Shown: piece after piece, positions 20,762-52,059 of the stretch
Layout: the number at the start of each line of letters is the position of its first letter
How positions within the stretch are numbered: position 1 is the stretch's first letter
From: Neoechinorhynchus agilis
Taxonomy: Eukaryota > Animalia > Acanthocephala
Length of the DNA: 64,000 nt
Reading direction: 5' to 3'
Assembly (NCBI GenBank): GCA_051530055.1
Contig: CM121342.1
Coordinates: 1,956,797-2,020,796 of the forward strand
Program-made: the position numbers and the translations under genes
The notes under the pieces: model-generated
Told to the model about the DNA's origin: nothing
Seen by the model: only the letters and a program-made list of their open reading frames with translations
Databases searched by the model: none

Positions 20762-21275
20762 ATACCTTTAAAAAATTACGTCGTCAAACGAATCCGACAT
20801 TTAGGAGTCCAATCGCCCGCCCTCTTCAAATTTTACTATAGCTTTATTTTACCTTAATTCACCTACGGTTATATAGTCTTTTGCAAACTAACCAATTCAT
20901 AAATCGCCTTGAAACATTTCAAAGAAGAACCCCTAAAATTTGACCAGTTGATTTCCCCCTCTCGCCAAATTCCTTTATAAGATTTTCAACAAACAATCAA
21001 AACGCCTCCCAACCCTACCACTACGATTTTTACCATATTTTATCCCCCTTTTCACACGAGCACAATACTCGCAATCCCAATTCCCGTTTTTCCTTTACCG
21101 CGTATCTGCTTTTACCTCTGCTTCTTTTTCATACTGGCAATCTTCTCGGATATCACAACCCGAAATGAACCTGAGGAAGGAACCAACCTGACAAACGTTT
21201 CTACAAACAATAAGCACCAACTTTCCCCCACTCGACCGGACTTGTAATCCCGTAAAAAATCAACAGGCGCATTCA
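20762..21275 (+). repeat. ~510-bp dispersed repeat, inverted partner of 32585-33067
   Basis: Near-identical reverse-complement match. The distal copy lacks ~30 bp (21128-21158). Contains a decayed hammerhead-like string CTGAGGAAGG...AAACGTTTC. Confidence 0.9.
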
Positions 21276-21292
21276 TTTATCCTATCAGAACT

Positions 21293-21680
21293 CAAGTGTT
21301 CACGAATACCCAAAGGTACATGGTTCTTTTTCTTAGTTCATTTATAAAACGTGTTGTTATTATTTGATTAAACATTCCGGCACGTTTTAATGAGAGATTA
21401 CACTTTGAATTGTATCTGCAATTTTTTAAATTACGGTTTGTACTTTGTAACTGATGCCCTCATTATATTTTTTGAAAGGTTCGTCAGTCAATGAATTTCG
21501 CGTTTTCGATTTGATGTTAGTCATTGCAGAAAATGAAGTTTCAAAAACGTAGGTACTTACAAACATTGTCAATACCTTTTCATGGCATCTCGATATTTGT
21601 CGAAATTCACCCGAAGAAATATATGTCATCCAGAACTCAATAACGTACCTTTGTGTTTCTCAGTGCAGTATTGGAAGGTG
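21293..21680 (-). mobile_element. hAT transposon 3' remnant (dimerisation domain plus end)
   Basis: FWMTYISSGEFRQISRCHEKVLTMFVSTYVFETSFSAMTNIKSKTRNSLTDE matches the hAT C-terminal F.STY.CE..FS.M..IKSK.R..LTDE pattern. Confidence 0.85.
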
Positions 21681-22101
21681 CGTAAAAATTGAATGATACA
21701 GCTGACTGATAAGTCCAGCTTTTTTCAAAAAACACTGATTTCCTTCAATAAAGTTCTATTAATTGATCATTCCCTTGCAATTTCAAATTTCATTTATTCA
21801 GGCGGTCCGTGATTTCAGTAAGAAATGCGAGTAAAACGATAAACATTGGTGTTTCTAGGTGAACAACAACTTCTTGGATTTCCCCGTGAGAAGAATTTTG
21901 TTTGTGAGAGCACGTTACCAAATACAGAAAGAAGAAGAAACACTATTTGGTAGCGAAAAATGATTTTTCTAGAAAAACAACCTCTGTTGGCTCGCGGGAC
22001 CCGCCGTAGTGGTACTTTTCTGTGTTCTGTTTTCCGTACGTGAAATGCGCAGGGGAGGACGAGGAGCCGATGGAAGCCAAATTTCCTCCATCTCCTGCTC
22101 G

Positions 22102-22174
22102 TGGAGCTGCCGGGTGTCGATCCCGGTGCCTCTCGCATGCAAAGCGAGCGCTCTACCAGCTGAGCTACAGCCCC
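22102..22174 (-). tRNA. trnA-UGC: tRNA-Ala (anticodon UGC)
   Basis: GGGGCTG TA GCTC AGCTGGTA GAGC G CTCGC TT-TGC-AT GCGAG AGGCA CCGGG ATCGACA CCCGG CAGCTCC A: full 73-nt cloverleaf with a eukaryotic Ala-type A54 T-loop. Confidence 0.95.
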
Positions 22175-22880: not shown

Positions 22881-23205
22881 TATTTTACATGCTACGATTT
22901 TGTTCAAGCGCAATCCGTCAACAGAACATTTGATGCAACATTTGATAAGTTCCTAAAAAAAATTTCGCACGCTGTAAATTAATTCGTCAATAAGTTCTAG
23001 TGCAAAAGAAATGTCAAAATCAAACCATCCTGCCTTGCAAAATAAGACTTCTTTGTGTAATTGGACCGGCCGGTTATTAGGACCAAAACGATCGCGTACC
23101 GCAGAAGCCCGATTAATCCCGGAATGAGGTTCTGTAGTTATCCTAACCATTGTGTTCAATGAAATCGACTCAAAAGATGGGAAATATACGATGCTCTCTC
23201 TACCT

Positions 23206-24610
23206 TTCAGCCAATCGCAGAAGTGCCTTTCTTGCATCGTCCACCGATTTCTCCAATGCGCCACTAACGAGTACCTGATTTCCGTTTTTGAAGAATTTCA
23301 CTTTCACGTTGTGTATACTTTCAAAAGATTTAATCCTCCATCCTTGCGTTCCGATCAAAAAAGGAATCACTGAAAGAGACAATGACGTTTCCTTTGTCCA
23401 GAATTCTCTGGACGAGTGTTCAAGTGGTCGTTCGGACTCTTCGCCGATGATTCTCCTAATTTCAGCGGAAGCTTGTCTACATTGGCTTATAGACGGACAT
23501 CTAATAACAAAATCATCATCTGATGGATCGGTTCGTTCATTTGGCGCAAATATCTCCACTTGATATTTCGCCATTATATTCCTCAGTATATCATTATCTC
23601 TTGTTATAATAAGCGGCCACTGGTCTTTTTGAATGTTTAAAAGCAAATCATGCTGTTTCGGATGCCGTTTTGGATTTCTAAATTGAGTCATTGTCTGATG
23701 GAGAGAATTCGCCATCAACTGTTCGGCCTTTTCGATTGACGATAGTGTGCCCATTAAGCGTCCAAGAAGACGACCGTGATGCCACGATGGAATTTGGATG
23801 ACCTTCGTTATTTCTAGCGTTGATTTTAGAATATCGATCACTTCTTTGCACCTATTTATGCGACCTGTGATTAGCAGCATTGGACAGTTTGAAGTTAACG
23901 GTATTTCAATCAGAACATTGTGATTGACAAAGATTGGCAAAATAATGTCTGTCGCCTTTGATTGGATTGCTTTTATTAACGAATCGGGAAACTAAACTTC
24001 GATCACTGTAACATCCTTCCATTCTTGTACAATTTCTTGTATTTTTATAATCGCCAGAACAACGTCAGGTTCTAGTCCGTAGACTACGATTTTCTCCACG
24101 AAAATACCATATTTGACAACAATAAAAATTCTAAAGTGAATAGCTAAAGTCCTAACAAATTCCGAGATTCCAAATAATATCGTGAATTTCGTTCGTTCAT
24201 TAATCACTGTGGCATAAACTCGTTTTTCGATCATTGGGCCGAAATTGTAAACAGCTCTTTTAATTTTCCCGATCGCGGCTTGTGCATTTGAACCATAGAA
24301 AAGTATTTTGTCAGGGTGATTCGTGTAATCAATCCGGACTTTCATTTCTCGAATACTGCATTATTTTGAAGTCCAATGGCATTTCCAATACTAAACTGCG
24401 GACACAATCTTCTATTCTGGCAGTCACGTATCGTAAAAATTTCAAACCCTCATCTTGTGGGCCTTTCTTTAAAATCGAATTTGGTCTTATTCCAACCAAT
24501 TTTGAGGACGCCGGAGGCTGCGCAAAATATTCAACGTTGAAGCGCCCATTTGATGCGAAATTACACATTATTGCGGGTGGAATTAGAATCGCAACGTGAA
24601 CCACCAACGC
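23206..24610 (-). pseudogene. Decayed copy of the multi-KH gene at 38881-40878
   Basis: Reverse-complement homology. Lacks the first ~150 codons and has a net 38-nt frameshifting deletion (~24345), a CAG>TAG stop (~23992), an in-frame 87-nt deletion in a KH domain (~23755) and a truncated 3' end. Confidence 0.9.
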
Positions 24611-25099
24611 TGAATTGCATAAAGAAAATTTGAACACTCCTTTTCGTCAAACTCCTCTCAGTTGAATTGAAGTAGGGTTAAAGAATTTCTAGGCTGGCAT
24701 AATTAATCGATTTCCGATGTATGCTATTATTAGTGATAAGTTTAAGTTGTGATTAAAACACGCTGGTCACCTTCAATGATTTTTCTAGTGTCTAACAATT
24801 CCTAAGAATTTAAATCGAACGATAATAAATTTCATTAACTAATATCAACCATCTTGAGCATTATTTGTCGTACCTGCGTTCAGATTTCGACCTTAATATT
24901 CTTAAAATTCATTTGCGATAAAAAAATCACAACGAATATAATATTAAATTGGAATAATTGTGATCATAATCCTGAATAAAGCATAGCCTCGCCTCATCAG
25001 TGATTGCTTGTAATTTGTAGAAAACTAAACAATAACTGACAAGACTCCCTCGCAAGATATTTCAATAAAAAAAATTTTAACAATTTTTTTAAGCAAGCA

Positions 25100-25690
25100 T
25101 TCATAATTTATAGTTTCACCAACGCTCCCATTCATCGGCGCTGGCCAAAATGCTGGCCGCATTGCCCCGCTGCACCGCAATGCTTATTTTTTGCGCCAAG
25201 AACGACGTCGATCTTGGCTCTCCGGTCGCCGCGTTGATTCGTTTCCCCAAGTCCTTCACGAGGGCCAGTGCCGACCCTCCCAAGGCTCCATACGTTTCCA
25301 CACCGAAGGGGACAAAATGGTAATTTCGGATTAGGTCCCTGTATTTTGAGAATTTCCGACCCTCTGCAGCCGTCGCCGCTCCTCCTGGACCTTTTTTCGG
25401 GTGGCTGATGTTGGAGTTTGCCAACGTGTCCACACACGTTGCATCCCACAACAAACATTTTCCCTCCCGCCAAGGAAATACGGTCACGCCATCAGGGCGT
25501 CTTCCATCTAATCTACAAAGATTAATGGGTTCTAGAATGTTTGGTAGGGAAAGCGTTTTTAGAGTCCTACTCAGAATGGCATTGATTTCAGCATGCCTTG
25601 GAAATCGTCCCGCTGACGACGTCTTGCATATGAGACCGTTTTATCCGGGATTATGATAACCAGAACTCAGATTCTACCAATCTGAAGGAT
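25100..25690 (-). mobile_element. CRE-clade 3' fragment (RLE)
   Basis: RHAEINAILSRTLKTLSLPNILEPINLCRLDGRRPDG...WREGKCLLWDATCVDTLA...PFGVETYG...AVQRGNAASIL. Confidence 0.9.
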
Positions 25691-25799
25691 TCCCTTCGGT
25701 GAATAATATAAAATATTTAGCAGAAAAGTATTTAAGATCGTACGTAGGTACGGAATTTTGTTATTCAACTGAAAAACAATCATCTGTTTATTCCAGAAT

Positions 25800-26380
25800 T
25801 TTTAAGCAGAGTAAAAGAGAAAAATGTGAATTCCCTCTTCGATTGGTTTAAATGAAATCTTTTGGGCTACGGCGTTTGCATTTTGCGGTGCTAATATAAA
25901 ACGTGAAGATGGAAATCGAGAACGAAATATTTCATAAGAATAAAGTTCATTCTTTTCGTTAACAAATTCCTCCTTTTCATCCAATTCTGCAGCTGTCGTC
26001 ATGATTGTTCGGCAGCTTCCTTAATGGCCGCGGCATTGCAGCGTTGGATCGCCGCGCTGATTCGCGGCATCAGGAAGCTGCTCTTCTTTTCCGAAGTATC
26101 CAAGCGTTTCCACCGCAATCGAGATGAAGACATATTGATACCCATCGAGCGAGGAGTACTTAGGCCGCTTCTTTTCCTCGCTGAAGCTCGCGACTGCTCC
26201 AGCTTTTGAGGTGGCATCCCGTAAGTGGGATGCTGCGAGCATGTTGGGGCATTTAAAATCCCAAACCAGTAATTTCAAGGAACACTATGGGATGCAGGGC
26301 GTTTACCGTCGTTGGCGTCTTTAGTGGAGAATGCCGCCCCGTGAAGGGGGGGGGGACAAACGAAACGAAAAATATCTCAA
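25800..26380 (-). mobile_element. Second, divergent CRE/RLE 3' fragment with an internal deletion
   Basis: LVWDFKCPNMLAASHL...KYSSL...IAVETLG followed by AAIQRCNAAAI. Confidence 0.75.
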
Positions 26381-26426
26381 GCAATGTATTTTTAAAATAT
26401 TTTATTAAAAAACTTGAATTTTTTTA

Positions 26427-27783
26427 TCAACTATTGAAATTGTAATATTCGTATTTGTGATATTGATTTATTGACTGTTGGACCGGTTGCACGAATTGTG
26501 CCTGTACCTGAAAAGGAGTAAACGAATTCTCACCTTGAGGACCGTACTGATAATATGACGTCACTGGTGCCATCGAAGATTGCTGATAATGAGCTGGCGG
26601 ATAATAAGAAATATAATCGTATTGCGTTGACGGACAAGGGTATGGATCCCGCTTGTATTGCACAAATTGTGGATTGCAAGACATTTCAAATTGAAGGTCT
26701 AAAAATCAAAAAATTGCTTAAATCTCTGTCACTTTTGATTAATCTTCTTGACCGCCGGCTTCTTTTAATTTGTGGGTCAATGGGAAAGCTCACATTTCGC
26801 AGTGAGTTAAGATCAAAAGCATTTACGGCATCGTAAAACGGCAATCAATACTGTATGGGAGTTCGCCTTTATTTGTTTGTATTTCAACAGTTAATGGGAA
26901 CACAAACAAAAGAGACTAATAAAAAATCAATTTAAACACGAACCTGTTTTTTGCCGTTTTCTGATTGGCTGCCCAGTGGTTGTGCCGTTAGTTAATCTAA
27001 AATGTGTAAATTAAAATTAGGATAATTTTCGAAAATAAAATTCAAACCTTCTTTTGGGTTCCGCAAATGCTTTGGCGAACGGATTATGCTTTATTTTAAG
27101 ATTTGTTATCTAAAACGTTTCTGTAAAACGATGCAATGATCAAATAAACAAATACATTTTCGTTTTGATAAGCCGTTACACATAAAAATTTTGACAGCTC
27201 AATTGTTTCACTTGCAATCAACTCCGATAGTTCACCTTCGATCCGGTAAATTAGGATTTCAGGAACGTACATGTGCAGAGTTTTTAATAAAATCTAAAAA
27301 TGATTGTTTTTAATTTTTCAAATACCTTCCAACCCAAAAAGATGCACAAACCTTGTCAACATTTGAACTGCTTGGCTGATTTGTAATTTTTAATCGCTCG
27401 AAACTGATTTCTTTGGACATCCAATGAAGTCCGTAATTCGGAGAATCCGGGTGCATATACTGTCCTTCGCTCACTGAAACCGATTGCTCGCCATTTCGAA
27501 TCCATTCACCGCCGGAGTACTTCCATCTACTCCGATTTGCGTATTTAAGCTTTAGAAAAATTTTATAAATTGAGTTTGAATCGAGACCGCTGACAACAAT
27601 TTTCAGAGACGGAAACATTCTTCGACCTGAACGCGTGACTATCATCTCTGTTTTACATTCCGAAAATTCTTGCCATAGCTCTCGATTGCTCAATTCAATT
27701 TTTACGTTGTCCTCGTCCGACTTTGACCGCTTGGATTGGTTGCATTCAAGGGATTCGAGAGATCGTTTTCGCAATGAATTCAT
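26427..27783 (-). CDS. bra: Brachyury-type T-box transcription factor, copy A (~318 aa); exons 27783-27352, 27293-27156, 27109-27048, 26996-26944, 26698-26427
   Basis: The T-domain has ELW..F...[41 protein letters not shown] and [37 protein letters not shown].HWM and KHNPFAKAF are Brachyury-like. All four GT-AG introns (58, 46, 51, 245 nt) preserve frame into a Y/Q/P-rich tail. Confidence 0.88.
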
Positions 27784-28899
27784 GTTTCTGTCTAAAATCA
27801 AGATTTTCAGAAGATATTTCGACCTCAAAATATATTTCTGTAGTGGTCGACCGTAGTTAGTACGATCAAACACAGCTCGTAAATGGACCAATAAAAATCC
27901 GAGGCCATAATTATGAGCAGTTGCTCAGCAAGAGCTGGCGCGCTTCGTGCTGTTTCTGCGTTTAATTAGGCTTTGAAAATGGAGATGTTAAAACCGGAAG
28001 ATTTTAAACGTTAATTATTCTTTAAGAATTTTTATGCAAATCGGGCGTAATTTCCAGAGAAAATAATTATCCATTAACATCTTATACGAGTCGCAGGTTT
28101 AGAATCCATTTTAATCGATGATACGATGTCCTTTATTTATAGTGTCCAATCCTATAAACGATTTTTTTTCAATTATTACGAAAAAGATTAAGTTACTTTT
28201 AAATCTGGAGCATCCATTATTATGGATTAAAACAATCGCCACTATTCAAAAAAATTATAACCAAGGATTTCGAAATTTATAGCAAATATTTTTTCAAACC
28301 CAAAGAACTTTAAAGTGTATAGTTCATGCAACATATTAGTGTCAAGACCCTAGTGGAAATCCGCTAACTATAAATGTTTTCGTGCTTATAAAGAACTAAG
28401 GTTTTACATCTCTGTTAAGTTCAGGAAAGCTATGAACATCGTTATGTTGTAATTTAGGAAGAATTGTGCTTTAATAATTAGCGATGCTGTCCAACGATTT
28501 TCTTTAATTCTTTTTATAATATTTTGAATGTAATTAAATATTTAAAATTGTTTTTAATATTTAAGATCATGTTATCGAACGTAAAAATGTCAATAAGTGA
28601 ATTTATAGTGTTTCATGCGTGAAAATGTAGAATAACTGAAAAGGGAGTGCAAAATGCACTTACGATAGTTGAAAACAGTTGATTTCATCTATTAACGATT
28701 TTACCTATTTTTTGCCTCATGGCATCTTAGAATATGAATAAAATCTAAGTTCGGTAAACTGACTTGCTCTGAATCAGTACGTCAATATTTATTTTAAGTT
28801 TGGAATCCTTATAAAGAGAAAATATTAATCGCAAACTGGAATATCAGAAATAATTTAATAGATCTGCAGTTATTTCGAGTTCTTTTGTGCATTAATTTA

Positions 28900-29200
28900 A
28901 CTTTAATTTTTCAGTTCTGGATATCCGAGCTGCCGTTCTGGTTTAATGGTCGAAAGGACGGATATAGCATCCACTCGTTGCACAGCAATATGTTTTGTAG
29001 GAGGAAGTAATTCGTCTCAGTCTCTTGGACAATTGATTCACGAGGTATTGCGCCGCGATACCAAACTGCCCGAGTGTCTTGCCCGAGTGTCTCGACACCA
29101 AAGGGAGCGAGGAATAAATTGTTGATCGTGGAAAAATTATTATAGTTGGTTGAACCGATGCAATGTTGATTTGTCACTCAAATGCAGATTCAAATCTCGC
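28900..29200 (-). mobile_element. Degenerate CRE/RLE 3' fragment
   Basis: FLAPFGVETLG and LLQNI..(AV)QR.DAISVL; DNA similar to 180-330. Confidence 0.7.
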
Positions 29201-29327
29201 CGTACTCAAGCATCGATTTTAACTTGGTAATATTTTCTCCTTATTGCTAAAAATCAACAGATTTGGCTTCGCGGAGCCTATCGAAACTTCATGGATTTCG
29301 AGCATTTTAATGTCGTAATTTTAAGTT

Positions 29328-31291
29328 TGTGGAGTGAGCGTTCGTCATCAGGTTTATATGTGTATTCCTTCGCGACGCCTATAAATAAACACGTTTTTGG
29401 GGCGGTGGTTGAGGAACCACCGTGAAACTTTCATCCGTTCCATCCGATACCTTGCCACTCCATTTGGACACCATCGGCTCAGTTGAACATGTGATCGAGA
29501 TACACGGGCCGTTACTGCATGCAAAAGTTCAACGATTGCCACCTGACAAACTAAAGCTCGCCTTGTAGGAATTCCGAGAGATAGAGAAATTGGACGTCAT
29601 AAGGCGATCCAACAGTTCATGGTCGTCCGCTTTACAAATGGTGCCTAAAGCTGATGGAGGTTGGAGACCCCGTGGAGGCTACAGGCGATTGAACGAAGTG
29701 ACAACGCCAGACAAGTATCCGGCACCGCGCATCCAGGATTTTACCTCCCGATTGGCAGGGAAAAGGACATTTTCGAAAGTCGATCTCGTCCGGATATTTC
29801 CTCGAAGGTCGAGCGTTCACCGTTTTCACTGACCAACGCCCATTGACTTTTGCGATTTCAAAGGTTTCTGATTCGTGGACGACGCGTCAACAACGACAAC
29901 TCAATTTTGTCTCGGAATTCACGACCAGCATTGAGCATGTAGCGGGTAAGGGCAATCTGGTAGCTGACGCGCTCTCAAGAATAAATACCTTGACAAGTAT
30001 CAGTGACGGCATATCGTTCGAGGAAATGGCACACGATCAGCTAGCCGACTAGAATATTCAACAATATAGTAAAGCGAAACATCTTTACAATTGGAAGACG
30101 TGCCATTCGACAAAGCACGACGAACTATACTTTGTGGCATTTCGACAGGTTGACACAGACCATTAGTGCCAACATCGTGGAGAAAACGAATATTCAATTC
30201 CGTTCATTAACTTTCCCACCCCGGAATCAACGCGACTCGCAAATTGGTTCGGGATTAAAAAAAATTGGCCAGGTTTATCGAAGGATATCAGTAACTGGGT
30301 GAAAACATGTATCGATTGCCAACGATCTAAACTTCAACGACATATGCGAGCACCGCCGCCAACATTCGAACTTCCGTCTCGCCGCTTCGACAATGTCCAC
30401 ATTGATTTGGTCGATCCGTTTCCTCCGTCACAAGGCTACAGTCGGTGGCCAGATGCGATCCCAGTGAGGAACACGGACGCGATCTCGTGTGCAAGGGCAT
30501 TTATTGGACACTGGACATCCCGTTTCGGAATACCTAAAGATCTCACTTCCAACCGTGGGTCGCAATTCATTTCGCAGTTGTAGGCAGCGGCAGCTAATCA
30601 TCTCGGAATGAAACTACACCGCACCACCGCCTACCACCCTCAATCGAACGGAATGGTCGAGAGGTTCCATAGACATCTCAAATCGGCTTTGAAAGCTCAC
30701 CTTCGCGGAAACAATTGGGCGGACGAACTCCCGTGGATTCTGCTAGGAATTCGAACGACGCCCAAATCCGATCTTGGATCGTCAGCGGCGGAGCACGTCC
30801 ACGGCAGTCCAATCAGCGTCCCAGCCGATTTCCTCGATGTATCTTGGAACCAGGTCGAGCCACACGTCCACCTACATCGTCTACGCGAGAAAATACAATC
30901 GTTAGTTCCTGTTCCTATCGTGCATCATGGCAGGATAACAACGTTTATACCTCAATCTCTAAATCGAGCTTCGTTCGTTTTCGTCAGACGCAGGCATCCG
31001 GGGGAATCCGATACAAACCCCATATACGGGACCCTACAGAGTCTTTGAACGAAGCGATAAAATGTTCACGGTGGATATCGGAGGACGACCTGAGAATTTG
31101 TCAATCTATCGGCTAAAGCAAGCCTACACCGAACCAACAGCGCCAGTCCAGCTCGCTCAGCCGCCAAAACGAGGACGACCTCCAAATCGTCCAATCGCAT
31201 TGGATATTAAACTTCTTCGGGGAGCTGTGTGGAGTGAGCGTTCGTCATCAGGTTTATATGTGTATTCCTTCGCGACGCCTATAAATAAACA
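29328..31291 (+). mobile_element. Internally deleted Ty3/Gypsy LTR element (1964 bp) with identical 64-bp TG...CA terminal repeats
   Basis: Repeats at 29328-29391 and 31228-31291. AGTT flanks both ends (possible 4-bp TSD) and a purine tract GGGGAG precedes the 3' repeat. Inside: RT start (SSWSSALQMVPKADGGWRP...DKYP), RNaseH end (FTDQRPL...NLVADALSR) and integrase (H.....HPG, CIDCQ, HIDLV, TTAYHPQSNGMVERFHR). No gag or protease. Confidence 0.9.
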
Positions 31292-31299
31292 AGTTTTTG

Positions 31300-32080
31300 C
31301 GCGGTGGTGAAAAAACCACCGATGTCCATTTTTCCCGTTACAATACTACATCCTATCGACAAAAAGTAAACGGGCAATGCGAGAGACTTAACGCCATCTT
31401 GTGGAAAACTATTTTGGATTGTATTAAGAGTCGGCGGGAAATCAATAACGACCTGGCACGACGCGCTTATTCTGGCACACGCCGGTATAAGATCATTATT
31501 ATGCACCAGCACCGGTAAGACGCCTCATGAAAGAATGTTCAGTTTTGAGTGGAGAGTTCCGCTAAATATCACCCTTCCTCAATGGTTACGTGATGGAGAA
31601 TCTGCGTGGCTCAAGAGCGGCCATCCAACGAGCAAAAACGAACGCTCGACAAAAAAGGTTAATCTGGTCGAAGCCAATGAAAAATATTCAGTTGTGGAAT
31701 ATCCCGACGGTCGCGTTGACAAAGTTTCCACCTTCCATTAATGCGCCAATTGAAGATAAGGATTCAACAAATGATTCGAACGTGGATGTAGGTACTCCTG
31801 ACGCGCCTTCGAGTGAATTGACGCCCTTGAAGGTTTCTAAGGTGATTAATCAAAATGGTCAATTAGTTCGTCTCTCCTGTCGATTTTCTTCATGAGACTT
31901 GCCGAAGGTTGTTATAGAATATCGACCCACGGGCATCACCATTATTTAGTGGCGTTACTATTATTTTCATCATAACGTTACAACGTGTGTGCAAGTGTTT
32001 AGTTTTGCCAGTGTGTTTTCTATTCAATAAAACCTCTTAATGGTCATCACAACAACGAACCACACGCTCACACTATAACA
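31300..32080 (+). mobile_element. 3' end of a different Gypsy element (integrase C-terminus plus 171-bp LTR at 31910-32080)
   Basis: TTSY.QKVNGQCERLNAILWK and LPQWL...VEAN..Y..V.YPDGR. The LTR is bounded by perfect inverted TGTTATAG/CTATAACA and contains AATAAA. Confidence 0.75.
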
Positions 32081-32367
32081 CGACACCAAGTGCCAAATAA
32101 TTACCATGTAACGAGTGTTTTTTCGTTGTCATTCGGTACTTCCATTAAGAAAGTCGTGAAATTGTCAGTTTGTATACTCAAATCAGCTTTTGAATTTGGT
32201 CAAGAGAAATTACAAGCCGCAGTCATCTTTACCCTGATGGCATTTTCTTGCTGGATTGCGATGCTAATATTCTGGTGGAACTAACCGGCCGAACGAGGGT
32301 TCGTGAAAATCCCCATACGTCTTCTGATAATAATAATAATAATAACACGTTTATTTGTTATATAAAA

Positions 32368-32504
32368 ATGTTGATATGTGAGGTACCGGGGAATGTGATC
32401 GGAATTATTGTTTAGAAGTCTACACCCGCAGTGGATCCGACGAGGTTCCAAACGTCTTTAATAAATAATCATTTACTGCGGGTGTAGAGCTAAACAATAA
32501 TTCC
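32368..32504 (+). repeat. Fold-back element enclosing the 3' half of a hammerhead core
   Basis: GGAATTATTGTTTAG..CTACACCCGCAGT pairs with ACTGCGGGTGTAG..CTAAACAATAATTCC around CCGACGAGGTTCCAAACGTC. Same family as 41718-41876 and 59545-59680. Confidence 0.75.
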
Positions 32505-32584
32505 ACGTTTATTTGTCAATTAAAAAAGAATTGGACCCATTTCCCCCTTGGGGCCTCATGAACCTTGAGTTCAGAGTTGCTCAT

Positions 32585-33067
32585 TGAATGCCGTTGCTGA
32601 TTTTTTACGGGATTACAGGTCCGGTCGAGTGGGGGAAAGTTAGTGCTTATTGTTTGTAGAAACGTTTGTCAGGTCGGTTCCTTCCTCAGTTCATTTCGGG
32701 AAAGAAGCAGAGGTAAAAGCAGATACGCGGTAAAGGAAAAACGGGAATTGGGATTGCGAGTATTGTGCTCGTGTGAAAAGGGGGATAAAATATGGTAAAA
32801 ATCGTAGTGGTAGGGTTGGGAGGCGTTTTGATTGTTTGTTGAAAATCTTATAAAGGAATTTGGCGAGAGGGGGAAATCAACTGGTCAAATTTTAGGGGTT
32901 CTTCTTTGAAATGTTTCAAGGCGATTTATGAATTGGTTAGTTTGCAAAAGACTATATAACCGTAGGTGAATTAAGGTAAAATAAAGCTATAGTAAAATTT
33001 GAAGAGGGCGGGCGATTGGACTCCTAAATGTCGGATTCGTTTGACGACGTAATTTTTTAAAGGTATG
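32585..33067 (-). repeat. Inverted partner of 20762-21275
   Basis: Direct reverse-complement comparison. Confidence 0.9.
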
Positions 33068-35099
33068 ACGAGAGAGGTTTAAGTTCCCTTAAGAAAATAT
33101 TAAAAGGAAGGAGTGACAGGACGGTACCGTGAGATACGATTTTTGTGAGGGATTTGATGAGCAAGGAGGTAGCCTGGCAGTGAATGTATCGTTGGCGATT
33201 GTGAAGATAGGTAGACAGCCAGTGGATCTGTCATGAGTTTAGACCGAAATCGGAACAAACCTGAAGAAGTAGTCGATGGTCTACTGAGTCGAATGTTTTC
33301 GATGAGTCCATTAGAACGAGAAAGGTGAAGTAGGGGTTGGTTATTTTCGAGCTTGTGTAGGAGCGTCTCGTAAATGCAAAGTAAGACATCCGTTGCCGGA
33401 AATTTGGGTCGGAAGCGAAATTGTAAGGGCGATTGTTTGTTGTTGAGAAGTAGTTTCAGCGCCGCTCCGAAAATTACGAAGTTTAAATCCGCGCACATTT
33501 CTCTACATTTTAGACATTTCTTTTGCTATGCTGCTGTCGCCATTGATCTCGGATCTCTCCGCGCAATATTGTCGGAGGACTTGGCGGATGATTTGCGTCC
33601 CATAAGGGGCATTTTCCTCAGGCCCAAGGAGAAATCAGTCACACCGTCCGTCGTCCGATCTGAAAGATTGATAGGCTTCAAGATATTGGGAGCGTTGATC
33701 GAAGTCAGCGCCCTACCGTTGATCATTTTCATGTCGGCGTGTGGCACAAGGCGATTAGAAGAGTTTCGTCGCACTGCTGGAATCGCTTTAAACCACGCGC
33801 AAAACTCCTTAGTTGAGCATGCGATCAGTCTCGTCCGGGAGTTTATGTAATTATATTGAAAACTTTCAATTATTTACTTGGTAAAAAGTTTGATATTCAC
33901 TCTTTCTGCGTTTGTGCCAAATCCAACGTATTTTTAGAAAAATTAATCCATTTACATATTCATTGGTTTATACCATTTTTAGTTTTCAAGCACTAATGCC
34001 AGCACAGTATCTTCTTTTCCATTTAAAATCTGGTCTTTTGTTTAAGACTGCTGGCGTGACGTATACTCACGAACGGCGAAGTTTTTCTGAACTGATTTAG
34101 AGAATTTGATTGCAGCAATTTTTAGTACACCGATGATGAGCGGACAAAATGCTGTTTTTAAATATTTTAGTATGATACTTTTATCTTTTTATTACAAGTC
34201 GAGAAAATGTCCGCAAGTTTTCGATGGCTGATCAATAAGACCCTTTCGAAGAAATAAGAAATCTTTGGGCGAGAAGCAGATGAGTGAGAAACCTTGCTTC
34301 AGAATGAAATGAGCATTTCGAAGTTTCTTGAACGGTGCCGTTATTTCTGGTTTTTGTTTTTTATATCTTTTTAAGCGCATTTCTTGCTCTTTTATTTCAC
34401 CATCGGCGATTTAAACAACGCTTTCGTTCTTCCTTTACACGTTTTTTTAAATTTAATCATTTATCTGAGGTCATTAAAACTAAATCGTTTTATTTGATTT
34501 GATGAAAAAAATATATTAATCGGCCTCTTCAAAATGTAATCTAAAACTCCACATATTCCCTTTTCTATAAAGCTATATTGATCCATAAATTTTGTTGGAA
34601 TTGATATTTACGACGACTATGGCACGATTTGCTGTCAAGTGGATTTGTGATGATCATACATTTTAAATCTCTTAGTAAAGTGTCGTTTTTTGTGTTTAAA
34701 ATTCTCGAGTACTTCTGAAATGTACATTTCAAAACACTCTAAACACTTTATTAAGGATTTCATTTAGATATTTTCATCGCTATATGTCGTGAAATTAAAA
34801 CGTAAATGTCAAACAAACGATTAGTCAATCTCTAGAACACTTCACTCGATAATATCTACGATGAACGTTGACTTTAGAAGAGTTAGTCATATTAGTTATG
34901 AGTTATGAACCAAGATAGCAGAATATTAAAAAAACTCGAAATGGTTGGGCGAACTGTGGAAAATTAGATTGTGAAACCATAAATTCGTTATTTTACAATT
35001 GTTATTATTTTGGTCGATCATAAACACCCGCGAGGGACATTATCAATTCAAATCTAACAAATATACACGTAAGGTCATAATCACACGAAATGATTGTTT

Positions 35100-35690
35100 T
35101 AGTTTTTACTCGGGAACCCGGGATCGTCATCTTTGTATGCTGCCTCCCTGGATGGATTTTGACTCTGTTCCTTGCAGAGAACTTCGGTTTTAACGAATCC
35201 AATTAAATGTGGAGTTTGGTTTTGAATTTGTATCGCCACATCGAAAAGCGTACTTGTGTTCAAGGAGACGGGTTTCTTTGAACAACTCATTTTCACCTAC
35301 GTAAAACCTTGATAGTCCGAGTACCCTTTTTGCTATTGGCGAGAATCAAGTATTTCGAATTTCCAAGTGTTCTGCGTAAAATATTGGAGCAAATATCACC
35401 AATCTGAATTCAGATCGGATAAAGGCCACTGCTGAATTTTCCATTAGTCGATTGGATCGGTATACATCTCTTGCTTATAAGCCTATCGCATCGCCTAATC
35501 CAGGTATTACCTTTTTTCTACATGTTCTTAATATTATCGATCTCACGATTTCTCTCATGATCAATAGAGGCGAGTTAGTTTTCCATGATGTGCTTTGCAA
35601 ACAGATTCCAGGTTTACGGTATATGGAAGTGTTTATAGCCAAGAAAATAGCTGCGATCACAACCCGCGAAAGCGCAATAAGTTAATTTTT
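35100..35690 (-). mobile_element. PLE remnant (RT thumb plus GIY-YIG)
   Basis: NTSIYRKPG..Q..SWKTNSP...VRSII and ..DYQGFYVGE....RLLEHKYAFRCGDTNS. Confidence 0.7.
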
Positions 35691-35852
35691 CAAAAAATTA
35701 AGAATATAGCTAGAATTTTATAAAATACTTCTTAGTTTGTAGCAGTTTCAATATATGAGGCAATTACGATAATTATTGCCGTCAAATCTCCAAGGAATCC
35801 TTAATGAAACGTTAGGCTTTTAAATTTGGTTAGTACGAATAGAGACAAATTC

Positions 35853-38800
35853 TCTTCCGGTTTTAACACCTCTATTTTCAAAGCGTAATTAAACGCAGAA
35901 ACAGCACGAAGCGCGCCAGCTCTTGCTGAGCAACTGCTCATAATTATGGCCTCGGATTTTTATTGGTCCATTTACGAGCTGTGTTTGATCGTACTGACTA
36001 CGGTCGACCACTACAGAAATATATTTTGAGGTCGAAATATCTTCTGAAAATCTTGATTTTAGACAGAAACATGAATTCATTGCGAAAACGATCTCTCGAA
36101 TCCCTTGAATGCAACCAATCCAAGCGGTCAAAGTCGGACGAGGACAACGTAAAAATTGAATTGAGCAATCGAGAGCTATGGCAAGAATTTTCGGAATGTA
36201 AAACAGAGATGATAGTCACGCGTTCAGGTCGAAGAATGTTTCCGTCTCTGAAAATTGTTGTCAGCGGTCTCGATTCAAACTCAATTTATAAAATTTTTCT
36301 AAAGCTTAAATACGCAAATCGGAGTAGATGGAAGTACTCCGGCGGTGAATGGATTCGAAATGGCGAGCAATCGGTTTCAGTGAGCGAAGGACAGTATATG
36401 CACCCGGATTCTCCGAATTACGGACTTCATTGGATGTCCAAAGAAATCAGTTTCGAGCGATTAAAAATTACAAATCAGCCAAGCAGTTCAAATGTTGACA
36501 AGGTTTGTGCATCTTTTTGGGTTAAAAGGTATTTGAAAAATTAAAAACAATCATTTTTAGATTTTATTAAAAACCCTGCACATGTACGTTCCTGAAATCC
36601 TAATTTACCGGATCGAAGGTGAACTATCGGAGTTGATTGCAAGTGAAACAATTGCGCTGTCAAAATTTTTATGTGTAACGGCTTATCAAAACGAAAATGT
36701 ATTGTTTATTTGATCATTGCATCGTTTTACAGAAACGTTATAGATAACAAATCTTAAAATAAAGCATAATCCGTTCGCCAAAGCATTTGCGGAACCCAAA
36801 AGAAGGTTTGAATTTTATTTTCGAAAATTATCCTAATTTTCCCTTACACATTTTAGTTTAACTAACGACACAAACACTATGCAGCCAATCAGAAAACGGC
36901 AAAAAACAGGTTCGTGTTCAAATTGATTTTTTATTAGTCTCTTTTGTTTGTGTTCCCATTAACTGTTGAAATACAAACAAATAAAGGCGAACTCCCGTAC
37001 AGTATTGATTGCCGTTTTACGATGCCGTAAATGCTTTTGATCTTAACTCACTGCGAAATGTGAGCTTTCCCATTGACCCATAAATTAAAAGAAGCCGGCG
37101 GTCAAGAAGATTAATCAAAAGTGACAGAGATTTAAGCAATTTTTTGATTTTTAGACCTTCAATTTGAAATGTCTTGCAATCCACAATTTGTGCAATACAA
37201 GCAGGATCCATACCTTGGTCCGTCAACGCAATACGATTATATTTCTTATTATCCGCCAGCTCATTACCAGCAATCTTCGATGGCACCAGTGACGTCATAT
37301 TATCAGTACGGTCCTCGAGGTGAGAATTCGTTTACTCCTTTTCAGGTACAGGCACAATTCGTGCAACCGGTCCAACAGTCAATAAATCAATATCACAAAT
37401 ACGAATATTACAATTTTAATAGTTGATTTTAATTTTTCAAGTTTTTAATAAAATATTTTAAAATACATTACTTTGCTATTCGGGATTATGATCACAATTA
37501 TTCCAATTTAATATTATATTCGTTGCGATTTTTTTATCGCAAATGAATTTTAAGAATATTAAAGTCGAAATCTGAACGCAGGTACGACAAATAATGCTCA
37601 AGATGGTTGATATTAGTTAATGAAATTTATTATCGTTCGATTTAACTTCCTATGAATTGTTAGACACTAGAAAAATCATTGAAGGTGACCAGCGTGTTTT
37701 AATCACAACTTAAACTTATCACTAATAATAGCATACATCGGAAATCGATTAATTATGTCAGCCTAGAAATTCTTTAACCCTACTTCGGTTCAACTAAGAG
37801 GAGTTGTCTAAATTTTTATTATGTACTTTTCGAATTATTATTTATATTCCTAAAGCGATATTAATTGCGAACAAGTTTAAAGACTTGGAATTACACAAAA
37901 AATTGAGAAATTTTAAAGAAATCATTAACGATTAATATTTATACTTGCAATCCTATAATCCACTGTCTACATTCAACTAAATCATCGATAGTGGAACTTA
38001 CGTTATAATAACTTTCGAACAATGACTGATGAGGCGAGGTTCCTCGGCAAACATTTCCAATAAATCAAATATATTGTGACCGGGATTATTTTTATCAAAA
38101 GTATAATTAAACTAGATGACCCGAATTTTATTCTCCAATCGCAATGCATTTGTATATCTTAAGTGTACATTCATAGTGTCAAAATATTTTTAAACTTTCG
38201 AAAGTGCAATCTTTCCTCTGTAATTATTTTCCAACAAATAAGATAACCGCTATAAAATTAAGTAGGTCATATCGACTGCACTTTTTATCCGTATATTTTC
38301 AGTCTTGATGCCTTCGGACATACAAACTGAGACAAATTTTTAAACTTATTCACACTTAAAAGGACAAGATTGATCACTTGAATAAAAATAGTGCGAATGT
38401 TCTATCTTTAACTATTCATTGCGATCTAAAAATTACAAATATTTAGTTAAACTTGCGAAAATAATAATATCTCATTTTTATCTGCGTGGTGCTGATCAAA
38501 CAAAATCGTTGTAGAGATTCAAATTCAAAACAAAAATACGTCTGCAATTAATTATATAATTTTCGAAAACTATTACGTAATTTTATTGGGAAACATTTCC
38601 AGCTAAAATAATAGCGTTGTAACGGTTTATGTAATGATCACGAAATTTGGACCCAATAAACATTAGAATATTTACTTCGCGCACGAACACATCGGTCTAA
38701 ATATTCTATATCTAGGAATTAACACGTAAGTTTAACCGCCTGCTTCTCCCATTGATTGGTAAAAAAATTAATAAACAGTAATTGGTTACTATCAAAAATA

Positions 38801-40857
38801 ATTCCAACTTAAAATTTATCGTATCTCTATTTTCTTACTAAAGAAATCCCTTCTCAAGTGCGCTTTTTCATTCGCAGATAATGGCCTCAAGCAATATTCC
38901 TCAAATTGTAATGAAGAAACTTAAAATTGACAAGGGACTGTACGAACAAGCGATCGGAAATGAAAATCAAATAATAAATCAAATGAGGCAGGAATATTCC
39001 GTGGATATTGCGATTCTTAGAAGGTTTATCAATCTAATTGAAGTTGTATTTCGTGGTGAAAGATCTCAGGTTGAAATGTGCGCTCAAATCATCCGGGCAA
39101 TGTTAGCTAACGTCGAGAACAAAGAGATCTCAATGGTGCTGACAGTTGAGAGGGATCTTCACGGAATGGTTATTGGTCGCGGCGGTGCGACAATTCAGAG
39201 GCTTAGAAGAGAAAATAATGGTGTTTTGATCATAATTCCGCCCATTGGGTCAAAATCACCAGAAATTAATCTTCGTGGTCTTAAAGAAGATGTAGAAAGA
39301 GCAATGAAATCCATCGAAAAATTGGTAGCATCGGTGGTTGACGTTGCGATTCCAATTCCACCCGCAATAATGTGCAATTTCGTATCAAATGGGCGCTTCA
39401 ATGTGGAATATTTTGCGCAGCTTCCAGCGTCCTTGAAATTGGTTGGAATAAGACAAAATTCGATTTTAATGAAAGGACCCGAAGATGAGGTAGAAAAATT
39501 TAGACGATACTTGACTGCCAGAATAGAAGATTGTGCCCGCAGTTTAGTATTAGAAATGCCATTCGACTTCAAAATGCTGCAGTATATTAGAATGTATTGC
39601 GAAGGGGGATTCGATCAGGTTGAACGAGAAATGAAAGTTCGGATTGATTACACGAATCACCCTGACAAAATACTTTTTTATGGTTCAAATGCACAAGCCG
39701 CGATCGGGAAAATTCAAAGAGCTGTTTGCGATTTCGGCCCAATGATCGAAAAGCAAGTGGATGCCACATTGATTAACGAACGAACGAAATTCGCGATATT
39801 ATTTGGAATCTCGGAATTTGTTAGGACTTTAGCTATTCACTTTAGAGTTCTTATTGTTGTCAAATATGATTTTTTCGTCGAGAAAATCGTGGTCTACGGA
39901 CGAGAACCTGACGTTGTTCCAGCGATTATAAAAATACAAGAAATTATACAAGAATGGAAGGATGCTACCGTTATCGAAGTTCAGTTTCCCGATTCGTTAA
40001 TAAAAGCAATCCAATCAAAGGCGACAGACGTTGTTTTGCCAATCTTCGTCAATCACAATGTTCTGATTGAAATACCGATAACTTCAGACTATCCAATGCT
40101 GCTAATCACTGGTCGCATAAATAGATGCAAAGAAGTCATCGATATTCTAAAATCAACGCTAGAAATAACGAAGGTTATCCAAATTCCATCGTGGCACCAT
40201 GGTCGTCTTCTTGGACGCTTTGGCTGCGAGGTAAAACGAATCAAGCAAGAAAGTGGGACTAAGATAATCCGATTTCCGTTGAATGGGCAAGGAGATGATG
40301 TACTATTAAGGGGCACACTATCGTCAATCGAAAAGGCCGAACAGTTGATGGCGAATTCTCTCCATCAGACAATGACTCAATTTAGAAATCCAAAACGGCA
40401 TCCGAAACAGCATGATTTGCTTTTAAACATTCAAAAAGACCAGTGGCCGCTTATTATAACAAGAGATAATGATATACTGAGGAATATAATGGCGAAATAT
40501 CAAGTGGAGATATTTGCGCCAAATGAACAAACCGATCCATCAGATGATGATTTTGTTATTAGATGTCCGTCTATAAGCCAATGTAGACAAGCTTCCGCTG
40601 AAATTAGGAGAATCATCGGCGAAGAGTCCGAACGACCACTTGAACACTCGTCCAGAGAATTCTGGACAAAGGAAACGTCATTGTCTCTTTCAGTGATTCC
40701 TTTTTTGATCGGAACGCAAGGATGGAGGATTAAATCTTTTGAAAGTATACACAACGTGAAAGTGAAATTCTTCAAAAACCGAAATCAGGTACTCGTTAGT
40801 GGCGCATTGGAGAAATCAGTGGACGATGCATTAAAGGCACTTCTGCGATTGGCTGAA
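35853..40857 (+). repeat. Right arm of the large inverted segmental duplication
   Basis: Mirror of 23206-28001. The coordinate sum is 63854 across T-box exons 1-2. Confidence 0.92.
36071..37426 (+). CDS. bra: Brachyury-type T-box transcription factor, copy B (~318 aa); exons 36071-36502, 36561-36698, 36744-36805, 36857-36909, 37155-37426
   Basis: Same motifs and exon sizes (432, 138, 62, 53, 272 nt) as copy A; introns 58, 45, 51 and 245 nt; open frame throughout. Confidence 0.88.
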
Positions 40858-40878
40858 CTATTATCCGATAAACAATAA
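38881..40878 (+). CDS. Intronless multi-KH-domain RNA-binding protein (vigilin/Bicaudal-C-like), 665 aa
   Basis: HGMVIGRGGATIQRLRRE, HGRLLGRFGCEVKRIKQESG and IPFLIGTQGWRIKSFE are KH GxxG-type repeats, with further degenerate KH-sized units between them. Confidence 0.85.
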   Translation: MASSNIPQIVMKKLKIDKGLYEQAIGNENQIINQMRQEYSVDIAILRRFINLIEVVFRGERSQVEMCAQIIRAMLANVENKEISMVLTVERDLHGMVIGRGGATIQRLRRENNGVLIIIPPIGSKSPEINLRGLKEDVERAMKSIEKLVASVVDVAIPIPPAIMCNFVSNGRFNVEYFAQLPASLKLVGIRQNSILMKGPEDEVEKFRRYLTARIEDCARSLVLEMPFDFKMLQYIRMYCEGGFDQVEREMKVRIDYTNHPDKILFYGSNAQAAIGKIQRAVCDFGPMIEKQVDATLINERTKFAILFGISEFVRTLAIHFRVLIVVKYDFFVEKIVVYGREPDVVPAIIKIQEIIQEWKDATVIEVQFPDSLIKAIQSKATDVVLPIFVNHNVLIEIPITSDYPMLLITGRINRCKEVIDILKSTLEITKVIQIPSWHHGRLLGRFGCEVKRIKQESGTKIIRFPLNGQGDDVLLRGTLSSIEKAEQLMANSLHQTMTQFRNPKRHPKQHDLLLNIQKDQWPLIITRDNDILRNIMAKYQVEIFAPNEQTDPSDDDFVIRCPSISQCRQASAEIRRIIGEESERPLEHSSREFWTKETSLSLSVIPFLIGTQGWRIKSFESIHNVKVKFFKNRNQVLVSGALEKSVDDALKALLRLAELLSDKQ

Positions 40879-45599: not shown

Positions 45600-45671
45600 G
45601 GGAGTGTAGCTCAGCGGTAGAGCATTCGACTGCAGATCGAGAGGTCCCCGGTTCAATCCCGGGCGCTCCCT
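45600..45671 (+). tRNA. trnC-GCA: tRNA-Cys (anticodon GCA)
   Basis: GGGAGTG TA GCTC AGCGGTA GAGC A TTCGA CT-GCA-GA TCGAG AGGTC CCCGG TTCAATC CCGGG CGCTCCC T: 72-nt cloverleaf, U73 discriminator, TTTT ~36 nt downstream. Confidence 0.96.
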
Positions 45672-45929: not shown

Positions 45930-47700
45930 AGTCAGACTCGACGATACGTCGACTTGCAGGAAAAATTCTCTGTAAACGTATCACAGAGAAAACCGGGCAG
46001 CAACTTCGTCCAGTCCAACTGGGCTGCTGCACATCCTGCAGGGCGGAAGCTATTGTCCACGCGCTCCGAAAAGCCGTGCCTTATTCTTAAGTGTGATTTT
46101 CAGAACACCTTTAACTCTCACAAAAGTGAAAGCATGTTCTGCGCAATTAGGGATCCCGCACAAGAAGCCTTCCAGTATTTTCTCAATGCATACGGGACCG
46201 CGACTCCTTTGCTTTTCGAAGACCACTTCATTCGGTCCCAATAGCGCACTCTCTCCATTCCAGCTTCAACCCTTGGTACTTGGATGACGCTACACTCGGC
46301 GGTGATCGCTCCGTTGTACTGCGCGATTTGGAGACGTAGATAAGGGAGACCTCGAGATATCGAAGACGCCGCCAAAGTCAAGGACCTAATGGATGGGTTC
46401 GAGGCCGCAGCTCAAGGTCTGAAACTTGTGACTCCAAAGCAACTCAGCCTTCCGGGTAGTTGCGTTTTTGATTCAAATGTGGAAGCTGAGATCGGCCGTA
46501 TCATACCGAAACTTTCGTTGCTGTGCGATATGGCGAGCGCTCTCGGCTCACGAAGCGTTATTTCTGACAAAGAACGCACTCTTTATCCCGAAATTGTTAT
46601 ATGAGGTCCGCACAGCAAAATTCTTCAAACATAAGGAAGGATTGGCTAAGCTCGACGATAAGGTGAGGGCTTGTCTCGAGCGTATTTTAAATGTCCAACT
46701 CTCAGATGAGGCGTGGCGGCAAGCTTCATTGCCTGTGTCATCCTTGGATTGGGCATTCGGGCGGTAGCAGGCCTTGCCTTGCCAGCCTTTCTTGGATCGC
46801 ATGAGCAAATTCTGAGGGAAAAGGTTTTCTATTGACCAAGACTTTGCGGTGCCAGTTGCAGAATGGTACCAGCAGACAGGCGCTAACCATGTTCCCATGA
46901 ATGGCATCAGACAGTCGATCTGGGACAGACCTCTCGTCGCGAGAGCTCGCAGTTCTCTACTTTCAGGTTCTCGCGATGGGGTCGTCCGAGCTAGATTGTT
47001 GGCAGTTTCGACACGAGAATCAGGGGTGCGGTTGGAGGCTGCTCCTCTGGCATCTGTAGGAACTCTTCTCACTGATGAGGTAACGGGGATCGCAGTGTCC
47101 TTAAGACTTGGTCCCCAATATGCACGCCTCATTGCTGTCGATGTGGGTCTTTGGTTGATGCTTTCAGGCGACACGGTCTCGTTTGCCGAAAGTCAGGAAC
47201 GCCATTCTGAGATCAATAGCGTAATTTCTCGGGCGTTGAGAACGGCGAACTTCCCCGACATCTTGGAACCCGCCCATCTTTGTCGACTAGACGGTCGTCG
47301 ACCTGACGGAATTTCGCTCTTTCCGTGGTGGGAGGGCAAATGCCTTCTCCAGGTCGTCACGTGTGTGGACACCCTCGCAGTGAGCAACATTCTGTACTTT
47401 CTCAAAATCGCTGGAGGTACAGCTAGTGCAGCGGAAGGGAGGAAGGTTCGAAAATATAGAGAATTAGCAAGGGCCCAACATTTTGTCCCCTTCGGAGTAG
47501 AGACGTATAGAGCGCTTGGCAGCTCGGCACTCACTCTGCTGCAGGATCTCTCGAAGAAATTGAGAGAAACGACCGGCGACGCATGAGCAGGTGTATTCCT
47601 GCGACAAAATATCTCGCTCGCAGTACAACGAGGCAATGCTGCTAGCGTGATAGCGACAGCCGAGGAAGGAGAGAAGCTCCAATTTTGCGGACGGTGGTGA
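45930..47700 (+). mobile_element. Longest CRE-clade remnant (RT plus RLE), frameshifted and internally deleted
   Basis: TIRRLAGK...PVQLG...AEAIVH, LKCDFQNTFNS, LFIPKLLY, QASLPV, RHSEINSVISRAL...RPDGISLFPW and FVPFGVETY...AVQRGNAAS. Confidence 0.9.
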
Positions 47701-51930: not shown

Positions 51931-52059
51931 TTCCGGAATAATTATGGACAAATGTAATTGCAAAAGATCGACAATGCGGAAGCAGGCTGATCCGTGATGA
52001 TTGAAGTAGCTGATATGTATCTGAAAAATGATTAGAAACAAGGAAAAGACTATCTTTCA

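Follow-up and report, generated by a model that had tools for sequence, protein, structure and literature searches.

A gene-bearing inverted repeat with patchily diverged arms, carrying two T-box copies and one intact KH gene, in Neoechinorhynchus agilis

A 64-kb stretch of chromosome CM121342.1 of Neoechinorhynchus agilis (GCA_051530055.1; the window in what follows, in whose coordinates all positions are given) contains a 17.6-kb inverted repeat, the arms of which carry copies of a T-box gene and of a gene for a protein with multiple KH domains. We put at roughly three in four the probability that this structure arose as an old inverted segmental duplication of a ~5-kb two-gene segment, comprising a Brachyury-class T-box gene and a KH gene downstream of it on the same strand, with later conversion from arm to arm in tracts. 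The window was placed on the chromosome through two of its open reading frames (ORFs) that occur in the public protein collection; it spans ~1.957-2.021 Mb, and the locus lies at ~2 Mb from one end of the 16.4-Mb chromosome. It consists of the letters A, C, G and T only, with no gap and no N.

Self-comparison of the window resolves a whole structure of 17,652 bp, with a left arm of 4796 bp and a right arm of 5005 bp on either side of a 7851-bp spacer. The genes run in the order KH(-), T-box(-), spacer, T-box(+), KH(+), and the two T-box genes are thus transcribed divergently, away from the spacer. An earlier note on this DNA had proposed both this order and an inverted repeat of this size at 23206-40857; self-comparison and BLAST bear out its coordinates, size and spacer length, and Pfam finds T-box and KH_1 domains where the note had placed these genes. 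The main parts of the structure are as follows.

23206-28001, minus strand: left arm, containing a KH pseudogene, a transposon insertion and T-box copy L
28002-35852, no strand: spacer without internal symmetry, made up of retroelement debris and unclassified AT-rich DNA
35853-40857, plus strand: right arm, containing T-box copy R, intergenic DNA and the intact KH gene

Five collinear inverted blocks pair the two arms, with BLAST E-values of 1e-85 to 0 in the self-comparison, which rules out chance as the source of the inverted repeat. The blocks are listed here with the left arm first.

23206-23757 paired with 40857-40306: 98.9% identity
23756-24351 paired with 40220-39625: 93.6% identity
24353-24611 paired with 39585-39327: 88.5% identity
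24650-24978 paired with 37805-37477: 97.0% identity
26379-28001 paired with 37473-35853: 97.8% identity

The locus therefore has the form of an inverted segmental duplication: its two copies are collinear but oppositely oriented on a single molecule, are kept apart by unique sequence and have defined breakpoints. At the inner breakpoint, arm homology starts 218 bp upstream of the T-box ATG; at the outer breakpoint it stops 21 bp before the KH stop codon, where the right copy ends in …RLAELLSDKQ* and the left copy in …RLAER*. These positions imply that one KH copy was cut at its 3' end, and that one T-box copy was given a new distal upstream context. A sensitive self-comparison found no extra symmetry in the spacer or the outer flanks, and this empty result rules out an older, larger palindrome extending into them. 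Both sides of the left arm are bordered by retroelement debris, and for this reason our guess is that the right arm is the parental copy.

Block-wise global alignments of the arms give an overall identity of 96.4% (120 mismatches in 3359 alignable columns, or ~3.36 kb of each arm), with patchy divergence that ranges from 0.16% to ~8%. Four large differences distinguish left from right, namely a transposon insertion of 1.4 kb and three deletions (1.5 kb, 38 bp and 87 bp), all in the left arm. Discrete indels and patchy divergence had also been described in the earlier note, in agreement with these alignments and with the statistics for the six segments scored, which are given in right-arm coordinates.

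35853-35885: 3 mismatches in 33 columns, at the inner edge
35886-36523: 1/638 mismatches, 0.16%
36524-37476: 31/953 mismatches, 3.3%
37477-37805: 10/329 mismatches, 3.0%
39327-40218: 69/854 mismatches, 8.1%
40306-40857: 6/552 mismatches, 1.1%

Only two tracts between the arms pass 99% identity.

35886-36523, plus strand, left partner 27331-27968: tract 1, 1 mismatch in 638 bp, running from the shared DNA upstream of the T-box gene through exon 1 into intron 1
40311-40779, plus strand, left partner 23284-23752: tract 2, 1 mismatch in 469 bp, covering KH 3' coding sequence common to gene and pseudogene

Across the six segments divergence is strongly heterogeneous (chi-square 85, p = 6e-17). In a permutation test of run length, which is independent of the choice of segments, the longest identical runs of 527 and 250 bp were matched in 0 and 1 of 20,000 permutations, respectively. 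At the level of codons, silent-site divergence (dS) varies about twenty-fold among regions, rising to 0.16-0.23 in the KH core, and the ratio of replacement to silent divergence (dN/dS) can be read in two of the four regions compared.

KH core: dS 0.163, dN/dS 0.38
KH 3' end, 184 codons: dS 0.0085, dN/dS not informative with 6 differences
T-box codons 1-210: dS 0.0075, dN/dS not informative with 2 differences
T-box tail, codons 211-318: dS 0.031, dN/dS about 1.1 (9 replacement and 2 silent changes)

The ratio in the KH core is as would be expected for a comparison of one constrained and one free copy, while that in the T-box tail is indistinguishable from neutrality. Because tract 1 includes noncoding DNA and silent divergence itself differs ~twenty-fold, protein-level selection is excluded as the cause of the patchiness. 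One tract edge coincides precisely with the 87-bp heterology, which separates the KH core, 8% diverged, from the near-identical 3' tract; this is as expected if heterology can halt a conversion tract. The heterogeneous divergence is most simply read as the result of an old duplication, with dS of at least 0.16, and of several later conversion events of differing ages between the arms; such conversion is likely to lie behind the near-identical tracts. The idea in the earlier note that such conversion maintains the genes therefore survives in part: near-identical tracts flanking a 3-8% core speak indirectly for conversion, but maintenance of the whole cassette does not fit with the decay of one of the four genes. 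We saw no clear signal of strand or GC asymmetry in the arm differences, of the kind that biased conversion or decay of one arm might leave.

Several points weigh against this account. The segments entered into the chi-square were picked post hoc, after inspection of the data, and the argument for conversion draws solely on heterogeneity inside one genome. If a third paralogue elsewhere in the genome had overwritten the core of one arm, the pattern would be the same, and so it would if consensus polishing had homogenised the repeat copies or mixed them. The search for copies covered the 64-kb window only, all four gene copies are known as sequence, and the duplication structure, real as it looks, is taken from the assembled sequence.

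The first of these alternative sources can be stated more fully. The palindrome could be young, at about 0.2% divergence, with the diverged middle of one arm derived, by ectopic conversion, from an older third copy (paralogue or pseudogene) elsewhere, or it could be the product of a two-step duplication. Such a history would suit the three distinct divergence levels (0.2%, 3% and 8%) and their sharp boundaries at indels. However, it requires an unseen third copy, whereas the window holds no third copy of either the T-box or the KH gene, and an exact-sequence look-up of the left KH fragment, which detects identical proteins only, returned one place only, this locus. The arms are also collinear, with single shared outer and inner breakpoints. 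We regard this history as improbable.

Both T-box copies are intact, and the gene models are as follows.

26427-27783, minus strand: T-box gene L, five exons as in R, 318 amino acids, from sequence comparison with R
36071-37426, plus strand: T-box gene R, 318 amino acids, with exons 36071-36502, 36561-36698, 36744-36805, 36857-36909 and 37155-37426

The model of copy R was built by hand, guided by the public left-arm protein P0023 and by GT-AG sites; all four of its introns (58, 45, 51 and 245 nt) are GT-AG, and an AATAAA lies at ~37447, about 20 bp after the stop codon. Copies L and R differ by 10 amino-acid and 3 silent changes in all, only 1 of each falling within the first 210 codons. The public model P0023 (379 amino acids; 26021-27783, minus strand) splices the last exon of copy L into a transposon ORF at 26021-26278, and its last 87 residues come from this ORF, within the 1.4-kb insertion, replacing the native …VQAQFVQPVQQSINQYHKYEYYNFNS end. 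We take this chimeric end to be an annotation artefact. We also considered whether the T-box and KH genes might form an operon-like unit, which seems unlikely given the AATAAA after the T-box stop and the 1.45 kb to the KH ATG.

Membership of the T-box family is confirmed by Pfam (PF00907, E 3e-38), with exon 1 alone scoring 132 bits against a cut-off of 26, and the domain is complete, aligning end to end with positions 2-181 of the Xenopus Brachyury (Xbra) chain. Against solved structures the T-domain scores as follows.

Xenopus Brachyury: 188 bits
human Brachyury (T): 180 bits
TBX21: 160 bits
TBX5: 143 bits
TBX3: 138 bits
TBX1: 119 bits

By these scores the T-domain is nearer to Brachyury than to the Tbr/Eomes, Tbx2-5 or Tbx1 groups. 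Among the ten top matches for which a name was looked up, the best-scoring proteins with a single T-box are called brachyury or TBX19, and exon 1 is about 46-49% identical to these named members of the T subfamily. Among 1.84 billion representative proteins, no relative more than 50% identical to exon 1 was found besides the locus's own protein. The T-domain thus resembles Brachyury (T/TBXT) and TBX19 in its best matches, the Brachyury score exceeding that of the next family by 28 bits, and it is similarly compact. It departs from those proteins in the strong divergence of its C-terminal half and in having Gln where Xbra has Lys149 (…KITNQ… versus …KLTNK…). Conlon et al. in 2001 reportedly identified this lysine as a specificity determinant of Xbra. 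The name brachyury given in the earlier note is accordingly upheld as the best match in the structural database and weakened by the great divergence of the protein and by the Gln; "Brachyury-class", very divergent, would be the best label for the pair, a label that follows the best match.

The KH gene is intact in the right arm alone. The two copies and the pieces by which they differ are as follows.

38881-40878, plus strand: intronless multi-KH gene, intact, an uninterrupted ORF of 665 amino acids with its stop codon 21 bp outside the arm
23200-24611, minus strand: KH pseudogene, without codons 1-149 and with a frameshift, an in-frame stop and an 87-bp loss
37806-39326, plus strand: 1521 bp present in the right arm only, comprising the KH upstream region and codons 1-149
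39586-39623, plus strand: 38 bp present in the right arm and deleted in the left, shifting the reading frame of the left KH copy
40219-40305, plus strand: 87 bp present in the right arm and deleted in the left, which takes away the GXXG core of one KH repeat

Where the right arm has 37806-39326, the left arm has about 40 bp of filler (24612-24649), and this replacement points to a deletion in the left arm. The left copy also has an in-frame stop (…VIEV*FPD…), and the duplication boundary truncates it at the 3' end (…LAER* versus …LAELLSDKQ*). It is a pseudogene. The earlier note had placed a KH gene in both arms, which holds for the right arm; the decay of the left copy had been overlooked.

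In the 665-residue protein Pfam recognizes five KH_1 domains (E 6e-42), and about nine KH-like repeats can be made out by eye, two of them with canonical GXXG loops. The Pfam scan returned KH-type families only, with no SAM and no other domain. The best match among solved structures is a vigilin KH domain (E 4e-6), on a level with hnRNP K (2e-5). Among 5.8 billion proteins no close homologue was found, the best match having 23% identity over 23% of the query, and the ORF is absent as such from the public protein collection. Like vigilin (HDLBP/Scp160), the protein has back-to-back type I KH repeats and no other recognisable domain. Unlike vigilin, which has 14-15 tandem KH repeats, it has about nine, no recognisable orthology to vigilin/HDLBP was seen, and the weak vigilin match is no better than a generic KH match. 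Bicaudal-C, with its KH domains followed by a C-terminal SAM, is not matched either. The vigilin- or BicC-like label proposed in the earlier note thus reduces to a generic resemblance, and the gene product is a lineage-specific multi-KH protein.

Retroelement sequences interrupt the left arm and occupy part of the spacer.

24979-26378, minus strand: 1.4-kb insertion in the left arm only, carrying two fragments that belong to an ORF family associated with retroelements (…PWxEGKCLxWDATCVDTLA… / …PFGVETxG…)
29328-31342, plus strand: degenerate, internally deleted remnant of a long terminal repeat (LTR) retrotransposon, with reverse transcriptase, RNase H and integrase motifs
32556-33520, minus strand: reverse-transcriptase fragment of long interspersed nuclear element (LINE) type, in the spacer

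The 1.4-kb insertion, which may be flanked by a short target-site duplication, starts 48 bp past the stop codon of T-box L, downstream of the AATAAA; lying beyond the polyadenylation signal, it need not harm the left T-box copy. In the spacer, the LTR remnant is bracketed by a direct repeat of ~115 bp with 86% identity. The 3' part of the LINE fragment (32556-33066) recurs in inverted orientation at 20762-21305, outside the left arm, and 366 bp of the two copies are 100% identical; this suggests either a LINE family that was active very recently or a recent exchange between copies. A further fragment of the retroelement-associated ORF family lies at 28911-29177, and the public gene calls, which were consulted for 28002-33880 of the spacer, include no gene there. 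The earlier note was right on the length of the spacer and too generous in calling it "TE-filled" (filled with transposable elements): about 3.3 kb of the 7.85 kb is recognisable retroelement DNA, and the remainder is unclassified and AT-rich. The ORF family has five diverged copies in the window, at 3316-3804 (+), 25116-25487 (-), 26021-26278 (-), 28911-29177 (-) and 46849-47586 (+), which share the motifs RPDG…PWxEGKCLxWDxTCVDTLA and PFGVETxGxxG. The copies are unalike at the DNA level and have no Pfam match; they probably represent the C-terminal region of an unclassified retroelement. A giant DNA transposon with long terminal inverted repeats was considered as an identity for the whole unit and rejected, as the spacer holds retroelement fragments only and no transposase, and no target-site duplication surrounds the 17.6-kb unit.

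What is shown here is the arrangement itself, the condition of every gene and the uneven divergence; conversion as the cause of that unevenness, the parental status of the right arm and any function of the gene pair are inferred. In the proposed history, a ~5-kb segment with the T-box and KH genes would have been duplicated in inverted orientation, after which the left KH copy would have decayed into a pseudogene. A transposon would have entered the left arm just past the 3' end of the T-box gene, and the spacer would have gathered retroelement fragments. Gene conversion, as non-reciprocal exchange from arm to arm, may have made some tracts alike again at different times, namely the KH 3' end and the T-box promoter with exon 1, and have passed over the KH core. 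The net outcome is a divergently transcribed pair of intact T-box paralogues, with almost identical DNA-binding domains and diverging C-terminal tails, and one presumably working KH gene. As to how such a duplication may start, fold-back (inverted) duplications arise at double-strand breaks (PMC10622511), and the product here is likewise inverted. Fold-back at a double-strand break is therefore a plausible origin, although fold-back products have a very short initial spacer and the spacer here measures 7.85 kb, with under half of it recognisable as later transposon insertions.

Inverted false duplications do arise in long-read assemblies, and two haplotypes, or a chimeric or fold-back read, may have been joined head to head here in a genome that truly has one T-box/KH cassette. 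The region is repeat-rich, with a satellite and transposons nearby, which counts in favor of such an error. Against it, the window is free of gaps, the flanks are unique, and a 7.85-kb unique spacer lies between the arms, unlike in a zero-spacer fold-back. The arms also differ by the 1.4-kb insertion and the three left-arm deletions described above, and one KH copy is a multiply broken pseudogene. For alleles, the silent divergence of the KH core (0.16-0.23) would be very high, and it adjoins tracts of 0.2% divergence. On this internal evidence an assembly artefact appears unlikely, with only a small chance of being the correct explanation. The earlier note had argued for a real inverted amplicon rather than a duplicated assembly; the indels, the pseudogene, the silent divergence and the absence of N support the first half of that claim, a paralogous inverted duplication, but not an amplicon family. 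A count of T-box and KH copies, as the note had called for, run within the window, gave no more than the two in the arms.

The same note had likened the locus to ampliconic sex-chromosome or germline loci, and a sex-linked or germline-expressed palindrome, its genes kept by frequent arm conversion and selection as in mammalian X/Y palindromes, would account for several features. Near-identical tracts indicate conversion, neither T-box copy is broken and their DNA-binding domains have hardly changed, and the genes lie in an inverted repeat with a spacer. Mammalian palindromes, such as human Y P1-P8 and the 26 human X palindromes, have arms of 8 kb to 1.45 Mb with >99-99.9% identity (PMC8327919, PMC8600007, PMC3723533), and those of the primate X are defined by arms >8 kb and arm identity >99% (PMC8327919). 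The locus described here is like them in that inverted arms flank a unique spacer, coding genes lie in the arms and there are signs of non-reciprocal arm exchange. It is unlike them in that the arms are ~5 kb, at 4796 and 5005 bp, both short of 8 kb; the identity is patchy and falls below 99%, at 96.4% over 3359 columns; the KH gene of one arm has decayed; and two copies are seen in the window. The 8% divergence of the KH core further implies that conversion was sporadic. The sex-chromosome or germline idea is unsupported, and we consider this explanation quite improbable. Least probable of all is an extension of it, in which the palindrome would form a single unit of an amplicon, sex-linked or confined to the germline, in an invertebrate lineage that evolves fast, with a recruited Brachyury-class gene held as a concerted pair through conversion, its DNA-binding domain homogenised and its tails diverging under relaxed or positive selection.

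Closer analogues may be found in nematodes. Katju and Lynch in 2003 reportedly found many recent C. elegans duplicates to be inverted and partial, and gene conversion between nearby duplicates is said to have been described by Semple and Wolfe in 1999. Like young inverted duplicates of this kind in Caenorhabditis, our locus is an inverted duplication of a few kb with breakpoints through gene ends. To our knowledge C. elegans is without Brachyury, and the T-box genes here differ from Caenorhabditis pairs in being Brachyury-class by best match; they differ also in that a second, unrelated gene (KH) was co-duplicated, and lost in one arm. Caenorhabditis has 21 T-box paralogues, including near-identical redundant pairs such as tbx-37/tbx-38 (PMC9750850). 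In common with those pairs, near-identical neighbouring T-box copies have been kept here, with conversion between close paralogues. Taken together, short inverted gene duplicates with partial content and the Caenorhabditis T-box pairs seem closer analogues than the palindromes of mammalian sex chromosomes.

Across the window the GC content is 32-48% in 2-kb segments, and GT-AG introns of 45-58 nt occur beside long intronless ORFs. Together with the LINE and LTR fragments, the satellite and the neighbouring genes, these features mark the DNA as eukaryotic, and they may suggest a fast-evolving invertebrate animal with very short introns. The longest of those described here, at 10214-15571 (+), encodes 1785 amino acids with a C-terminal hydrophobic anchor; between 12701 and 15387 it contains about 11 copies of a 246-bp (82-residue) unit with a higher-order period of 738 bp and 92% identity, and the public model of the gene splices out most of this repeat to give an 822-residue product. 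A second intronless ORF, of 681 amino acids at 16626-18671 (+), is rich in Gln, Pro and Ser, has no Pfam family and is an annotated gene in the public record. Two tRNA genes, tRNA-Ala(TGC) at 22101-22174 (-) and tRNA-Cys(GCA) at 45600-45671 (+), lie 1 kb and 4.7 kb outside the arms, and an Rfam scan of the window returned these two tRNAs only. Neighbouring genes comprise an exon of a nucleotide-sugar transporter at 51616-52041 (-), a C9orf72-like gene at 53319-54293 (-) and MCM10 at 57116-58285 (-), with an OB-fold and a zinc finger. A word-indexed search of 5.8 billion proteins found no relative of this MCM10 other than itself, and this suggests a lineage that is poorly sampled or evolving fast. 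A 132-bp tandem duplication with 91% identity (56976-57224) overlaps the 3' end of the MCM10 ORF. Finally, a tandem satellite at 60201-63997, reaching to within 3 bp of the end of the window, has a 180-bp unit in at least 21 copies with about 95% identity, and the ORFs listed inside it are repeat artefacts.

As an inverted segmental duplication the locus is of an ordinary kind; gene-bearing inverted repeats with arm exchange are already known, and no new kind of biology is opened by this one. It exposes an error in public annotation, the left T-box model fused to a transposon ORF. Its value is as a compact example of the aftermath of a short inverted segmental duplication, in which one gene dies and the other is kept paired, while exchange between the arms would re-homogenise some tracts and stop at indels. 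If the organism matters to evolutionary developmental biology, the duplicated, very divergent Brachyury-class gene, with its diverging C-terminal tails, would be of interest for its expression.

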